Sequence record: PV158447.1
Strand: one strand, 5' to 3'
Length of the DNA: 64,000 nucleotides
The position numbers were made by a program, and so were the translations under genes. The notes below the pieces were generated by a model. The model did not search any database, was not told the origin of the DNA, and worked only from the letters and a program-made list of their open reading frames with translations. Positions 3,493 through 41,350 of this stretch are shown here, in pieces. Position 1 is the stretch's first letter. Each line of letters opens with the position of its first letter.

Positions 3493-4339
3493 CGTATTAA
3501 GTTTGGGGAACGTCATTCTTGCAGGGTCTGGTAAGAAAGGAATCCTAAAGCCGAATGGGGAAGGGGTTTACCGTCTCAATGCAGGTGGGTTCAATATCCC
3601 TAACTCTTCAGGCATTGGTTACCCAATGAACGATTACTTGATAGAACAAGTCGACAAAAACAGTGACTTGAACCGTCGGGTGAAATTGGGTTACTGCAAG
3701 ATGGAAGTGGAACATCCCCAACCCTTCGTCTATGTGGAAGAGAATGGTGTTCGGTATCGCAAACCGATCACTGATGTCATTGAGTGGATCACTCGCCTCC
3801 GTAGTTATGACCCTACTCAAATCTGTGGTCTGATTAGTCAGATCGATTGGGAGTTTGAAAACCCCAACGATATGTCTAAACCAGTCTACACGTTTATCCA
3901 CTGTGAAGCGTTCGGCCCGCGCGGTCCTGAGTTTGCTGAATCACTTTCCAATCCTCGTCATAACACGGCAGTATCCATCCGTACTCAGATCTCTCCGTGG
4001 CAACCAGGTCAGCTCCAACGCAATATCGAATACTGGACTGGTTTCGATTGGGTGAGTGAACCTGGAATGGTCCATGCCAACAAACACATGACAGCTGGTT
4101 GTGAATCTTTCCTCAGTGATCTCTCCATTGGGAGTAACGTTCAGAAGTTCAACGTAGGTGTTGTTCTGGAACGTTTGGATGATGCTATTAAAACCTCAGC
4201 AAACGACGCTGAAGCGCTTGCAAGGGTTGGTGGTATGGAAGCCCTGGATGACTTTACTAAGATCCTCACGGAGCTTAAGAAGGGTTATAAACGTGGTGAC
4301 ACGATTCGTGCTGCGGTAAGTATGACCGATGTATTCTAA
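3485..4339 (+). CDS. Prohead protease (phiKZ gp175 / SPN3US gp245 family)
   Basis: EVEHP (His), AVSIRT (Ser) and GFDWVSEPG (Asp) motifs; C-terminal CES/MEA autocleavage-like sites. ATG 3485 has better RBS spacing than 3476. Confidence 0.85.
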   Translation: MSNVLSLGNVILAGSGKKGILKPNGEGVYRLNAGGFNIPNSSGIGYPMNDYLIEQVDKNSDLNRRVKLGYCKMEVEHPQPFVYVEENGVRYRKPITDVIEWITRLRSYDPTQICGLISQIDWEFENPNDMSKPVYTFIHCEAFGPRGPEFAESLSNPRHNTAVSIRTQISPWQPGQLQRNIEYWTGFDWVSEPGMVHANKHMTAGCESFLSDLSIGSNVQKFNVGVVLERLDDAIKTSANDAEALARVGGMEALDDFTKILTELKKGYKRGDTIRAAVSMTDVF

Positions 4340-29260: not shown

Positions 29261-30117
29261 TAACGTCTCCTTGGTAAGAGCATCTTAACTGTATCCGTAA
29301 CGCCTTTCGGGTCCGAGTAAGCAAGATGTTTCTTCATGGATTCTTCAAAGAAGGTTTTGAACTCTCTGGCGGCGTCCCGGTATTCAGCAACATCGTCGGT
29401 CACTGCATCAACAGACACACCAAAACGCGATACAGCTTCCTGTACACCTCTTCGACACGTTTTGTATATGTATGCTTTCACCCCAAGTTCAACGAGCTCT
29501 GCGAACTTGTCAAACATCTTGGGAGGAATAACAGAGAAGTGTTCGTCATATGCCAAGATAACTTTGGCAATCATATTAAACATTGCTGAACCCGCATCCC
29601 GAATTAGGAAGGAGTTCTTGTTACCGGTCATGGTAATGTTGGTGAAGACTCGTTGAACGTTGCCATTATCCAAACCCACCATCAAACGGTTCATTGCGTT
29701 ACCAACCTGACCACCTGAATTACAAGGATCGTAATTAGCAAAGTTATACCCGTTACTAATGGCACGATTAATATTTCCTGGGTAAACCTCCAGGACACTA
29801 GTAATCGTTCTTCCGCCAGTGAGGTAATCTGGAACGTTAACGTAGATAATACCACCATCCACGTTTCGTATATGTGCGTTACTAAGATCAATGATTTCTG
29901 TAGTCCCGCCTGCAACGTTGAGTAGGGGTGCGATCATCCCAACGATGACCTTTTCTCGAATACCCTGTTCAACAGAATACTGATCGTTAGCATCCCCCCA
30001 GATGTGTCCGTAACCTAATCCGTTATTAGCGTTATCGAAAGCCAGTTTCAATAGGTAATCGGGAATGTCGGTAGGTCCACGGATGACGTAATTGATAGAA
30101 AAATCTACCGGATTCAT
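29260..30117 (-). CDS. Conserved virion structural protein
   Basis: 285-aa ORF coupled (TAATG) to the downstream gene. Confidence 0.6.
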   Translation of the reverse strand: MNPVDFSINYVIRGPTDIPDYLLKLAFDNANNGLGYGHIWGDANDQYSVEQGIREKVIVGMIAPLLNVAGGTTEIIDLSNAHIRNVDGGIIYVNVPDYLTGGRTITSVLEVYPGNINRAISNGYNFANYDPCNSGGQVGNAMNRLMVGLDNGNVQRVFTNITMTGNKNSFLIRDAGSAMFNMIAKVILAYDEHFSVIPPKMFDKFAELVELGVKAYIYKTCRRGVQEAVSRFGVSVDAVTDDVAEYRDAAREFKTFFEESMKKHLAYSDPKGVTDTVKMLLPRRR

Positions 30118-30199
30118 AGTCGACTCCTTGGTTATTAATAAGCGTACAAAAGATCGGAGAACAAAAAAACATCACCCTCACCCCCTAAGGAGCGAGAGT

Positions 30200-30705
30200 G
30201 AGTTTCAAAGGTACAACTACGCTTCCCACTGTAATCTAACCCGAGTAGACTCCTGGCCAAGGAGAATCTTCAAAGTTTGATTACAGTAGGCTGAGCAGTT
30301 AATCTACACAACTTCCCGACGTGTCGATCGGGCGGACTGTTTGACTGGACTTAAACTGGACACCCTCCTCAGAGGCAGTAATAAGTTAGTCACCGGGAAC
30401 GAATCCCGTCTTGCATAACACAGTTAGATCATGCAAGTATTTGATCACCATTCTCCGGGGAAAACTCGGAGGCGTGGGTGAGTAAGAGGATCCAGGGACA
30501 GGTCGATGTCTTTATCACTGTAGTGATAAATTGAACACGGTTGCTTATATTCCATTACAACGATGGCAGCTAGCGATTGTGTATTTTGGTAACGACATTT
30601 TGACAGTTGTTTGGATCCAATGAGTTTTCTTCCTGAAGCGAGGTCCCCACTCCAACCTACCACGAAAACATCAGTTAACGAAGTAAATTGTCTCCAGGAA
30701 GAAAA
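30200..30705 (-). ncRNA. Candidate large structured ncRNA downstream of the tRNAs (class unassigned)
   Basis: No credible CDS; many nested inverted repeats; followed on the minus strand by a G-rich stem and T-tract at about 30163-30200. Confidence 0.35.
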
Positions 30706-30708
30706 GGG

Positions 30709-30785
30709 GAGAGTGTTCTTGGAATCGAACCAAGGCAATCCCTCAGATGTGGCGAGGGCGACTTTCCAATCGTCTTTAACACTCT
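30709..30785 (-). ncRNA. Non-canonical tRNA-like element
   Basis: AGAGTGTT/AACACTCT acceptor stem, D arm GAC-GATTGGAAA-GTC, CCCTC/GAGGG stem with a 9-nt loop, T arm CTTGG-TTCGATT-CCAAG; no encoded CCA. Confidence 0.65.
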
Positions 30786-30790
30786 TTGTT

Positions 30791-30876
30791 TGGTGCGGGA
30801 TCCCGGAATCGAACCGGGATGACCGAAGTCGAGGGATTTTAAATCCCTTGTGTCTAACCAATTTCACCAATCCCGC
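30791..30876 (-). tRNA. trnL: tRNA-Leu (UAA)
   Basis: GCGGGAT/ATCCCGC acceptor, AGGGA-TTTAAAA-TCCCT anticodon arm, long variable arm, CCCGG-TTCGATT-CCGGG, encoded CCA. Confidence 0.95.
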
Positions 30877-30910
30877 TGATGCCGTCCCGTAGAACGGCGG
30901 TGCTGGGTTT

Positions 30911-31159
30911 TCAGCCAGCGTTGAAAGACACGCAGATCACCCCGGCAGGAATGCCTCCAGCAGAGCGACCAATTAGTGTGACTATGAGATCTTCAGGCAG
31001 AACTGGCCAAGAGTTTGATCCTCGGGCAGCGTCTTCGATATCATATCCGGCAGGATGCGTATATCTAGCAACCGATTCTGTCTCAGCAATGATAACGAAT
31101 GAATCGTACTCATCGTAGTCCACACTATCTGTTCTTTCAACTTTATAGATGTTCATCAT
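30911..31159 (-). CDS. Hypothetical protein (82 aa)
   Basis: AGGAA RBS; YDEYDSFVIIAE pattern common in small phage proteins. Confidence 0.7.
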   Translation of the reverse strand: MMNIYKVERTDSVDYDEYDSFVIIAETESVARYTHPAGYDIEDAARGSNSWPVLPEDLIVTLIGRSAGGIPAGVICVSFNAG

Positions 31160-31184
31160 TTCAACAGTTCCTATTGTCGTCTAT

Positions 31185-31373
31185 TTAGTCGCAAAAGGAC
31201 TTAGACTCTAGGAAGCATCTACTTTTAAACATCTTCATCCACGTCCCATGGGCGCGTGGGTACTCTACCGTCTCGGTAGTTGTTCCAGCTCTCACCAAGG
31301 CAACAGCATCGGTCTTGTGTAGTGTCGATCGGCCATATTGGCGGAAAACTACTAGGTGACCAAGGCGTGACAT
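31185..31373 (-). CDS. Hypothetical protein (62 aa)
   Basis: Short ORF co-oriented with its neighbours; weak support. Confidence 0.4.
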   Translation of the reverse strand: MSRLGHLVVFRQYGRSTLHKTDAVALVRAGTTTETVEYPRAHGTWMKMFKSRCFLESKSFCD

Positions 31374-31386
31374 GATGACAACTGTA

Positions 31387-31860
31387 CTGGGTCATGACCC
31401 AGGTTAGGTGGGGTACTTTGAGGTATCGAAGAGCAAGATCCGTGAGAGGAATGCCCTAGACCTGAAACGGATCTCTTTGTGCAAGGAGAACATCTCAAAG
31501 TCCCCTAACTGTTAAACTGTTTGCTATAGAATAGCAAACAGTTTAATTTTTAATATCCACTTTTTAAATGGATATTAAAAATCGCTATCTCTAACAGAGT
31601 GAAATAGCGAAAGAAAAGAATCATGAAAAGAAAAACCTAGTGACAACAACGAAGAGTGCAAACTTGGAAACACAACCCTTCTTAATATACTCTCTACATT
31701 GAGAATTCATTAAGAAGAGCAGGAACGTGGGAGGAGTTCACGTTCCTTACTCTTTCACTATAAGAGGAGTCGAAGGAAATGGCTAACCTTCTTAATGAAC
31801 ACTCTGTTCAAATATCCATTAAGAAGTAGAGTGGTCTTGGGAGCCACCACTCTACTCGAT
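31387..31860. repeat. Tandem array of inverted repeats and palindromes (non-coding)
   Basis: At least 8 hairpins or palindromes with 7-16 bp stems; two share the stem CTTCTTAAT/ATTAAGAAG. Confidence 0.85.
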
Positions 31861-31987
31861 TACGGTAAGGAGGTATTTAATGTGCAACTGAAGCGCAAGC
31901 CAAAGCGGAGCTATCACTTCCAGATGTTTACTTGTTAAAATAAACATGTGTGAAGTCAGTTCTTTTTTGAACATATAATAACAAGTT

Positions 31988-32020
31988 CCATATTTTTTCA
32001 AACCTATATTATCGACATGT
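31988..32020 (+). promoter_or_regulatory. Putative early promoter
   Basis: CCATATTTTTTCAAACCTATATTATCGACATGT. Confidence 0.7.
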
Positions 32021-32052
32021 ACAATCTCGTACAGTTATTTAGGAACATCGTC

Positions 32053-37439: not shown

Positions 37440-37800
37440 TTTAGTAGTCGATACATATACTATGTAATTGTTTCACTTCTACTTTCGCTTTTAACTCATT
37501 TTCTTATCTATTTTCAAACTCTTTTCTTACTCACTTTTATGGTGATTGAGGAGGGGTTTGGGGTGGAGCAGAAGGTGGTCGTCAGGAGCAATTACCTAGT
37601 CAGTAAAGGCCGAGAGGCCAGTTTGATTAGTTATTAAAGGAAAAGTGATTAGGATAAGGAATAGAGGAATGAACGAAGTGAATGACTTCCTTATTCCTAA
37701 CTCACTTGACTGAAGAAAATCAGAGAAATGAATTAGAGAAGATTATTAACCTTATCTGGAGAGAGATCTCTGGGTAGGGTAGGGTCTATTATGTCCATCG
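37440..37800 (+). repeat. Intergenic element C (modular, structured)
   Basis: TATACTATGTA, pyrimidine tract, TCAC/GTGA hairpin, GAGGAGGGGTTTGGGGTGG, GGCC-GAGA-GGCC, long hairpin around GAACGAAGTGA. Confidence 0.65.
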
Positions 37801-40994: not shown

Positions 40995-41350
40995 AAAATG
41001 TATACTATGTATTTCACCGTCTTTTCTCTGACTGTTTTTCTTCTACTTCTCTCTGATTCTCTTCTTACACTTTTGAGTGTTTAGGAGGGGGTTTGGGGGT
41101 GGTCAGGAAGGAACTCGGTCAGGAAGGAATGAAGGTCAAATACCGAAAAGATCGAAAAGATACGGGGGTTGAGGCGGAAGCCTAATTAGTGATTATTGAG
41201 AAGAGAGATAGAGAAAGAGATTAAGAAGAATAGATAAGAGAATTACATTGAATTGAGATAAGGATTAGGGAAAGGGGGTCCGGGGGAAAACCCAAAAATG
41301 AAGAATTAAACTCACTTGGGAGAAATCCTGAGTGGGTAAGGGTTTTGTTT
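40995..41350 (+). repeat. Intergenic element D (homologous to element C)
   Basis: TATACTATGTA, pyrimidine tract, ACAC/GTGT hairpin, AGGAGGGGGTTTGGGGGTGG, AGGC-GGAA-GCCT, purine tract, GGGGGTCCGGGGG. Confidence 0.65.

Follow-up and report, generated by a model that had tools for sequence, protein, structure and literature searches.

The sequence considered here is a window of 64,000 nucleotides from the genome of Aeromonas phage AhC3_1 (PV158447.1, 232,884 bp), whose host is A. hydrophila. Coordinates are those of the window, and the addition of 62000 converts them to coordinates of the record. AhC3_1 is a phiKZ-like jumbo phage, as judged from the genes in the neighborhood, which code for a DUF7484 virion protein, phrog_2921, thymidylate kinase, and the large terminase. 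Between a leucine tRNA gene and the gene of the virion protein, from 30118 to 30790, the annotation of the record is empty. The features of the locus, in the order in which they are read on the minus strand, are as follows:

31159-30911, minus strand: ORF96 (phrog_5444)
30876-30791, minus strand: tRNA-Leu(UAA), called by ARAGORN and by the Rfam tRNA model (55.6 bits)
30785-30709, minus strand: tRNA-like element, abutting the 5' end of the candidate RNA
30705-30625, minus strand: long hairpin P1, present in the minimum-free-energy (MFE) fold; 5' end of the candidate RNA
30624-30446, minus strand: middle part, folded (z = -3.2 together with P1, 30446-30708) and lineage-specific
30445-30162, minus strand: conserved 3' unit of about 280 nt, made up of HP-L, a connector, HP-A, HP-B, and the terminator
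30437-30410, minus strand: hairpin HP-L, in the MFE fold, with a covarying stem and a loop that pairs downstream
30409-30342, minus strand: connector between HP-L and HP-A, in the MFE fold
30341-30307, minus strand: hairpin HP-A, with invariant columns (helix 1 of covariance model R1)
30301-30214, minus strand: hairpin HP-B, 88 nt (helices 2-5 of R1; seen in the folds of 17 homologues)
30201-30162, minus strand: intrinsic terminator found by a terminator scan (hairpin at 30201-30172)
30117-29260, minus strand: ORF95, the DUF7484 virion protein gene

Taken as a whole, the region folds better on its minus strand than dinucleotide shuffles do, with a folding-energy z of -5.2 (-4.2 when the 3' half is taken alone, -3.2 for the 5' half), and the plus strand gives a z of -4.3. 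The stems listed in the original prediction are all on the minus strand, and all of them are found in the MFE fold. The stem UUUUCUUCCUG/CAGGAAGAAAA (30705-30625) is P1, UUUAUCACU/AGUGAUAAA (30530-30511) lies within the middle part, CUUGCAU/AUGCAAG is HP-L, CGGGA/UCCCG (30408-30394) belongs to the connector, CCCGA/UCGGG (30332-30315) is the upper stem of HP-A, and CUGUAAUC/GAUUACAG, which encloses CUCCU/AGGAG, is HP-B. The T-tract terminator expected on this strand is there as well, in the form of a 13-bp stem with seven G-C pairs followed by UGUUUUUUUG, and it is placed 45 nt before the DUF7484 start codon (30117).

The region does not appear to code for a protein. An open reading frame of 141 amino acids on the minus strand (30870-30445) was considered as a gene and rejected; it starts inside tRNA-Leu and has no match in Pfam or PHROG. 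The original prediction had allowed for its being conserved, and the relatives turned out to have no counterpart, their longest same-strand ORFs on the RNA being at most 49 amino acids, none of them conserved. Several deposited genomes carry small hypothetical ORFs annotated on the RNA locus.

When the region was compared by blastn to 50,697 phage records, only AhC3_1 itself and matches to tRNA-Leu came back, so homologues were reached through the neighboring DUF7484 gene. The use of ORF95 as a tblastn query led to 158 phage records, with protein identities of 61-73% in the close relatives. Every close relative inspected has an unannotated gap of 0.5-1.2 kb between the tRNA cluster and the ORF95 homologue. 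These relatives are ZPAH34, AerS_266, CF8, AVP1, pAEv1810, PS1, D6, N1M2, OBP, and Yubaba, together with AH04, Kc263, SXP01, Survivor, pEt-SU, and four uncultured phages from IMG/VR. When the 350 nt that precede the gene were aligned, a shared core emerged, consisting of ACnGUnnGC, a variable hairpin, GAAGUKG, CAGCC, a long hairpin, UnGRRWG, and a terminator.

In eight sequences from OBP and phages like it, RNAalifold predicts two extended hairpins, HP-A and HP-B, with 36 pairs, 15 of them showing compensatory changes. A covariance model, R1, was built from these eight sequences only, leaving out the Aeromonas phages. R1 matches AhC3_1 over its full length at 30346-30211 on the minus strand (33.2 bits, E = 6e-6), and this is its one significant match in the whole 233-kb genome. 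It also matches AVP1, pAEv1810, and PS1, and CF8 weakly; there is no match in SXP01, Survivor, pEt-SU, an EL-like phage, or phiKp_32. Paralogy of the locus with the intergenic stretches 37440-37800 and 40995-41350 of the same genome was considered and dropped, similarity being absent.

The covariation that the original prediction said might be missing from homologues is present and strong. In a 12-sequence alignment to R1 (A12), 90.8% of the cells are paired, compared to 37-51% when the partners are slid by one to three columns; the first figure is inflated since the alignment was fitted to the R1 structure, and the slid controls share this bias only in part. These controls, together with an alignment that was not fitted (A14), lessen the bias. 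Two-sided changes are seen at 23 of the 36 pairs in A12, which scores 0.567 for covariation compared to at most 0.138 in the slid controls, and none of 500 shuffles attains any of five measures. The sample is small, comprising about 17 sequences from roughly eight clades. Many of the pairs are G-U pairs, one of them invariant, and the other strand would have C-A mismatches in their place. This means that the structure exists on the minus strand only.

This strand dependence also bears on the idea that the region works as DNA, whether as a replication origin, a packaging signal, or a promoter array. The better-than-shuffled folding of both strands would suit such an element, and the terminase gene is only a few kb away. 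The pairing, however, depends on many G-U pairs, which neither the opposite strand nor double-stranded DNA can offer, tRNAs precede the region, a terminator follows it, and homologues carry on the same strand a hammerhead with an invariant core (described below). We consider a DNA-level element extremely improbable and a real, strand-specific, selected RNA structure very likely indeed.

The conserved 3' unit begins with HP-L, whose stem covaries between phages (CUUGCAU/AUGCAAG, GUCGC/GCGAC, GCUCC/GGAGC, and GGAAC/GUUCC) and whose loop has the consensus YUAACnGUG. In AhC3_1, the loop sequence ACUGU (30424-30420) is complementary to ACAGU (30340-30336) at the base of HP-A, some 85 nt downstream, giving a long-range pseudoknot of 5 bp. 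When 17 phages are aligned by MAFFT alone, with no structure imposed, 85 of 85 cells of this pseudoknot are paired, compared to 12-41% in slid controls. Its center pair is Watson-Crick in all 17 phages, as C-G in seven, U-A in seven, and A-U in three. The three states are spread across both the Aeromonas and the OBP-like groups, implying several independent double changes. The connector that follows HP-L contains the hairpin CGGGA/UCCCG and a branched hairpin with GACUAAC, part of a block (GACUAAC/ACUAAAC) common to AhC3_1, OBP, and ZPAH34.

HP-A has two conserved strands, S1 (AAACAGUCCGC, which contains the ACAGU) and S2 (GAAGUUGU, 30315-30308). Between them lies the stem CCCGA/UCGGG, which is variable, and together they make up an asymmetric internal loop that is conserved; across 14-17 phages, the columns A, C, G, U, G, C ... 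G, A, A, G, U, G are invariant. As helix 1 of R1, HP-A has ten pairs, six of them changed on both sides, with 97.5% of the cells paired. Its lower stem joins the same ACnGU bases to GUKGU, the n-K pair being A-U in five sequences, G-U in four, and U-G in three. Since ACnGU is used by both the HP-L loop and GUKGU, the two pairings are mutually exclusive, and the competition could allow two conformations, that is, a switch.

The rest of the unit is HP-B and the terminator. HP-B hardly varies in length (about 88 nt) and keeps one architecture in the folds of 17 homologues, in which a basal stem is followed by the conserved internal loop C-AG-CC / GG-AA-G and then by a long stem with an apical stem-loop; in R1 it contributes 26 pairs, of which 17 have changed on both sides. 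Inspection by eye showed no conservation of palindromic kissing loops in HP-B or of a helix that would close the unit by joining its two flanks. A hairpin and U-tract equivalent to the AhC3_1 terminator are found in all homologues, and this terminator is the probable 3' end of the RNA. A conserved motif containing TATG lies 3' of it, which we take to resemble the late promoters of phiKZ-like phages.

The position and the competing pairings raise the question of whether the RNA works in cis on the late virion operon (DUF7484, phrog_2921, and thymidylate kinase), as a leader or an attenuator in which the ACnGU pairings are a read-through switch. In most phages the RNA does lie directly 5' of the DUF7484 gene, and a terminator ends it, as would be expected of an attenuator with mutually exclusive pairings. 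The terminator is not part of the competing pairings, however, and the presumed late-promoter motif comes after it. The distance from the unit to the DUF7484 gene grows to 100-1000 nt in pAEv1810, D6, and three of the uncultured phages (L011, L013, and L014), and the space is occupied by an opposite-strand HNH gene in pAEv1810 and by another ORF in D6. Finally, SXP01, Survivor, and pEt-SU have the terminator and the gene without the 3' unit. On these grounds, a leader seems unlikely to us. A partial parallel is offered by sRNA005 of phage 201phi2-1, which is derived from a 5' UTR, and the gp182 sRNA of phiKZ, which are conserved in position and end in a terminator before a structural gene (PMC11512511). 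Like the AhC3_1 unit, they are small structured RNAs of phiKZ-like jumbo phages with a terminator 5' of a structural gene; unlike it, they belong to another locus (before the tail gene gp277/gp182), are shorter than 250 nt, and have no link to tRNAs.

The link to tRNAs is at the other end of the AhC3_1 RNA. The original prediction spoke of tRNA genes in front of the region, and this holds for one of the two. The canonical tRNA-Leu(UAA) lies upstream on the same strand, has homologues in the same neighborhood of ZPAH34, AerS_266, AVP1, and pAEv1810, and probably shares one transcript with the RNA. In a relative of AhC3_1 (run X12), there is an insertion of 671 nt beside this gene. The second candidate, at 30785-30709, is not a canonical tRNA gene; it is called neither by ARAGORN nor by the Rfam tRNA model RF00005. 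This tRNA-like element retains the acceptor, D, and T arms and has an aberrant anticodon arm, with a loop of 7-11 nt that in most phages still has CAU inside. Compared to a canonical cloverleaf, in which the anticodon loop has 7 nt with U33 and a purine at position 37, its loop is 7-9 nt long and lacks U33. It is conserved in ZPAH34, AerS_266, D6, AVP1, and pAEv1810, with compensatory changes at five of the eight acceptor-stem pairs. At the same spot before the RNA, CF8, N1M2, and Yubaba have a canonical tRNA-Ile2/Met(CAU). In AhC3_1, ZPAH34, AerS_266, D6, CF8, N1M2, and Yubaba, the 5' end of the RNA borders directly on either a tRNA or the tRNA-like element.

The tRNA-like element probably derives from a tRNA(CAU) and probably acts as a processing signal. 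It would have been kept as a handle for the tRNA-processing enzymes that make the 5' end of the RNA. There is a precedent in the mascRNA of MALAT1, in which a non-decoding tRNA-like fold stands at the border of a long noncoding RNA, and tRNA-processing enzymes make the RNA end. The systems differ in that the AhC3_1 element is on the 5' side, that the setting is bacterial, and that cleavage in AhC3_1 is inferred. Stable RNAs from tRNA operons also have a phage example, since species 1 and 2 of phage T4 (RNA C and D) are small stable RNAs that are encoded inside its tRNA operon and processed from it. T4 belongs to another phage family and its RNAs are much smaller, and homology is not expected.

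The 5' part of the AhC3_1 RNA is far less widely shared than the 3' unit. P1 has a pyrimidine-rich 5' strand and a purine-rich 3' strand, and an equivalent occupies the same place in ZPAH34, AerS_266, and CF8, with a consensus of 15 pairs and two-sided changes at four of them. The middle part (about 180 nt) is folded and poorly conserved, being weakly alignable to ZPAH34 and CF8. The support for these first 260 nt comes from four closely related phages, with hardly any for the middle part. When a profile of the OBP-like RNA was compared to the Aeromonas loci (nhmmer), only marginal matches at the 3' end were returned, so that the 5' 260 nt of AhC3_1 are not recognizably related to the 5' domain of the OBP-like phages. 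As far as the alignments go, P1 and the middle part are lineage-specific.

In the OBP-like phages, the counterpart of this RNA is larger. The whole gap of about 1 kb is alignable among nine of them, with many invariant blocks, and the AhC3_1-type 3' unit forms the tail of an RNA of about 1 kb. The 5' domain (about 700 nt) has a consensus of 99 pairs, of which 55 are compensatory. The gap also contains a predicted type I hammerhead ribozyme, in which CUGAnGAGUC ... GACGAAACGGG ... CCGUC is invariant in 12 of 12 sequences, as are the core, stem II, and the proximal stem III, and the GUC cleavage triplet is present. Where the hammerhead does vary, it covaries: All four pairs of stem I have changed on both sides among the 12 sequences, as have two of the four pairs of a pseudoknot between the stem II loop and a strand 5' of stem I. 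Overall, 88.8% of the hammerhead cells are paired, compared to 17-57% in slid controls. The Rfam hammerhead model (RF00163) gives the OBP sequence 16.6 bits (E = 1.1, with a gathering score of 34), which is low because stem I is interrupted.

The predicted hammerhead is on the same strand as the 3' unit and upstream of it, and in the OBP-like phages HP-L starts a few bases past the GUC cleavage site. Cleavage there is thus predicted to release the 3' unit as a separate RNA with a 5'-OH end. Unlike these 12 relatives, which have the core, stems I-III, and the GUC triplet of RF00163, AhC3_1 and the other Aeromonas phages lack the core; a strict pattern for it finds no site in the window or in the other loci searched (L002-L008), and no hammerhead match is returned at E <= 10 for 29900-31700. 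The sole CUGAGGA in the AhC3_1 RNA continues with CAAAC, not GAAA. The hammerhead, as predicted, is the sole self-cleaving ribozyme of the family and belongs to the OBP-like relatives only. Another arrangement is seen in SXP01, Survivor, and pEt-SU, where the 5' domain and hammerhead are followed directly by the terminator. These differences between relatives suggest that the family is modular and that AhC3_1 has a reduced form.

Such variability could also mean that the RNA is a passive trailer of the tRNA operon, which stabilizes or processes the tRNA precursor and terminates transcription without a function of its own. The length (500-1100 nt) and the 5' part do vary greatly across lineages, and the RNA has the orientation of the tRNAs with a terminator at its end. 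A trailer of this kind would hardly account for the invariant internal loops, the constant 88-nt hairpin, and the covarying long-range pairing, all kept while the neighboring protein has diverged to 61-73% identity. Nor would it be expected that the OBP-like phages spend a predicted ribozyme on the release of the unit. A passive trailer is therefore an improbable explanation in our view, and we favor a separate stable RNA over a mere trailer or leader with some, not overwhelming, confidence.

Known classes of RNA were searched for at several levels. At the gathering threshold, Rfam finds only tRNA-Leu in the whole window, and the same is true at E <= 10 for the 1.8 kb from 29900 to 31700; at E <= 10 on the OBP and AVP1 loci, nothing but the weak OBP hammerhead is returned. 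The original prediction had pointed to fragments reminiscent of transfer-messenger RNA (tmRNA). They do not make up a tmRNA, as ARAGORN calls none in the window and no model of the tmRNA clan matches at E <= 10 in 29900-31700. The codons reading like QSLAA (CAA UCG CUA GCU GCC) continue with AUC and not with a stop. The comparison to ROOL, GOLLD, and theta ribozymes, made in the same place, is useful as an analogy of context and goes no further, since matches to these classes are absent: ROOL (RF03087) and GOLLD (RF01998) have none in the window at the gathering threshold or in AhC3_1, OBP, and AVP1 at E <= 10, and the HDV-like (theta) ribozyme models have none at E <= 10 in 29900-31700.

One could still imagine that the RNA belongs to a known class, for example, tmRNA, RNase P RNA, the remnants of group I introns, or 5S-like RNA, and has diverged so far that the curated models fail to detect it. 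There is a short resemblance in GACGGGAUU, noted earlier, and the hairpin-GAAGU sequence presumably resembles the CAGAAGUGAAAC segment of 5S rRNA. Against this, no Rfam family is matched at E = 10 on the conserved unit of AhC3_1, OBP, or AVP1, ARAGORN finds no tmRNA, and neither acceptor and T-arm ends, nor a tag ORF with a stop, nor P4-type helices, nor a splice-site context were seen. The chance of a divergent known RNA appears very slim. The covariation, the match of a model made from other phages, and the absence of Rfam matches support the view that the tRNA strand carries an unannotated noncoding RNA, possibly of a new class, much as originally predicted.

GOLLD and ROOL are described in the papers on them as large structured noncoding RNAs of phages and prophages, typically beside tRNA genes (PMC5737381, PMC12286853). 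The jumbo-phage RNA is similar in being a large structured noncoding RNA next to tRNA genes, and, at about 1 kb, its OBP-like form is of comparable size. It differs in that it matches neither their sequence nor their structure models. The hosts differ as well, being Firmicutes for GOLLD and ROOL (all the well-studied examples known to us are from Firmicutes and their prophages) and Gammaproteobacteria for the jumbo-phage RNA, and the OBP-like form has the internal hammerhead.

The hosts of the family are Aeromonas, Pseudomonas, Klebsiella, Serratia, Kosakonia, and Erwinia, and uncultured phages carry it as well. A strict HP-A/S3 signature, run against IMG/VR and the JGI metagenomes, found only three uncultured jumbo phages that were already known. 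The same signature gave nothing credible in 185,579 genomes (one per prokaryotic species). Its other matches were at chance level and failed the model. As far as such a strict pattern can tell, the family seems confined to this one clade of jumbo phages, which form a nucleus. The idea that ORF96 (phrog_5444) might be a partner dedicated to the RNA was rejected, its homologues being widespread in jumbo phage genera where the RNA is not seen. A report of the RNA, or of a hammerhead in jumbo phages, was not found in the literature searched. Phage OBP is mentioned in two metatranscriptome papers, and these mentions are BLASTX or Kraken assignments and uninformative.

Hints of expression come from wastewater, no true infection transcriptome having been found among the indexed public runs. 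In two cDNA libraries from one study (among four runs compared over 29300-31700), contigs of 151-176 nt, 100% or nearly identical to AhC3_1, fall only on 30189-30373 and 30587-30736, amounting to three contigs at a depth of 3-4 in libraries flagged as possibly DNA. No contigs from these libraries fall on the flanking genes or the next gap within that stretch. The pattern fits a stable RNA and is only suggestive. In the X12 strain, which is about 95% identical to AhC3_1, 23 of about 580 positions differ in the RNA (about 4%) compared to 58 of 840 in ORF95 (6.9%), which speaks for selection on the RNA.

Taken together, positions 30705-30162 on the minus strand are likely the gene for a structured noncoding RNA of about 540 nt that is stable, processed, and trans-acting and that founds a new family; the leader, the trailer, the DNA element, and the divergent known RNA are each less well supported than such a trans-acting RNA. 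The RNA would be transcribed together with tRNA-Leu and the degenerate tRNA-like element, its 5' end would be freed by host tRNA-processing enzymes at that element, and it would end at the intrinsic terminator just before the late virion gene. In the OBP-like phages, the hammerhead would instead release the 3' unit from the precursor of about 1 kb. AhC3_1 would have replaced the ribozyme and the large 5' domain with a lineage-specific part of 260 nt that starts with a long hairpin. Both designs would be expected to give a nuclease-resistant 5' end, which would suit a stable RNA acting in trans. As for its role, a protein-binding scaffold or decoy, working through the conserved internal loops, is a tentative suggestion that we would put somewhat short of probable.

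A broader reading, for which the case seems to us evenly balanced, is that AhC3_1 has the reduced form of an undescribed class of large modular RNAs that is specific to these nucleus-forming jumbo phages. The 3' unit would then be an autonomous RNA with an ACnGU switch, which either acts on a host or phage factor or assembles in the manner of ROOL and GOLLD. If this is true, the OBP-like form would be an RNA of about 1 kb with a covarying 5' domain of about 700 nt and a hammerhead that splits it in two, and the factor targeted might be found, for example, in tRNA and translation biology or in anti-defense.

Large structured phage RNAs linked to tRNAs, such as GOLLD and ROOL, are among the least understood RNAs. 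The jumbo-phage RNA would add a separate, unannotated family from phiKZ-like phages of Gammaproteobacteria. Such phages grow on laboratory hosts, and for phiKZ there is a report of phage genes being knocked down by antisense (bioRxiv 10.1101/2024.07.31.605949). It would also correct the annotation of several deposited genomes, in which the small hypothetical ORFs sit on the RNA, and give the hammerhead, as predicted, a new natural context. The relatives amount to a set of natural experiments, with phages that have the full-length RNA and its hammerhead, phages that have lost the 3' unit, and phages such as AhC3_1 that have kept the 3' unit alone, so that the function of each module becomes testable.

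Between the tRNA/glutaredoxin genes and a hammerhead ribozyme, the OBP-like jumbo phages carry an RNA domain of roughly 700 nt that is structured, strongly conserved and rich in invariant blocks. The consensus of the domain holds 99 pairs, of which 55 are compensatory (RNAalifold), and a comparison with Rfam gave no match. By itself, this domain is a candidate large ornate RNA. The copies are listed here by locus of the relative.

L010:2950-3672, about 700-nt RNA domain of OBP
L018:1895-2590, further copy
L009:2890-3593, further copy
L020:1850-2631, further copy
L019:1825-2582, further copy
L017:2174-2899, further copy
L021:2227-2905, further copy
L016:1726-2408, further copy
L012:1329-2089, further copy

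The hammerhead is predicted to be of type I and is found within the RNA of 12 phages, in which its core is invariant and GUC is the predicted cleavage site. Both stem I and a pseudoknot between the loop of stem II and a strand 5' of stem I covary across the 12. The Rfam score is below threshold, and a literature search turned up no earlier description of a jumbo-phage hammerhead. A possible remnant of this ribozyme lies directly upstream of HP-L, the first hairpin of the conserved 3' unit, in AVP1 and pAEv1810, where CCGCGA...AAACAAAGA...AGAAC, a stem-loop and then GUUC resemble the OBP-like hammerhead region. Both the CUGAnGA box and the GAAA box carry mutations, and the element may be a decayed ribozyme.

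L010:3573-3700, predicted type I hammerhead (equivalents in L009, L011-L014 and L016-L021)
L003, about 3510-3600, hammerhead-region lookalike of AVP1 (same in L002, pAEv1810)

Hypothetical protein genes have been annotated over or opposite the conserved RNA in public records, and these are probably spurious calls.

L009:2874-3386, N1M2_252
L003:3848-3964, AVP1_0151
L020:2527-2718, hypothetical protein gene
L008:3187-3309, D6_0006

Aeromonas jumbo phages, at least six of them, conserve the tRNA-like element, which retains the acceptor, D and T arms. Its anticodon loop is irregular and lacks U33, and the element apparently derives from tRNA(CAU). The tRNA/RNA region is interrupted by HNH homing-endonuclease genes in two Ferozepurvirus phages, pAEv1810 and PS1. 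An AhC3_1-related strain in public sequencing run X12 (~95% identical) is 671 letters longer in the stretch from tRNA-Leu to ORF96, at window 30875-30878.

Window 30709-30785, minus strand, tRNA-like element
L002:2887-3939, HNH gene of pAEv1810, opposite strand, between the RNA terminator and the DUF7484 gene
L006:1924-2427, HNH gene of PS1, within the tRNA/RNA region
Window 30162-30172, terminator U-tract (equivalents include L009, about 3870-3885)

In most relatives, the U-tract past the terminator reads GGGGUUUAUGUUUG, with TATG inside, followed by the conserved GAUCUUUUGUAA; AhC3_1 has GAUG where the relatives mostly have TATG. Judging from this TATG-containing motif, a late promoter may overlap the terminator tail. 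Another unannotated gap, spanning about 890 nt (window 31160-32052), separates the divergent ORF96 and ORF97. Several promoter-like sites lie in it, along with long AT-rich hairpins (e.g., 31511-31547 and 31721-31747), and it probably carries the promoters of both operons.
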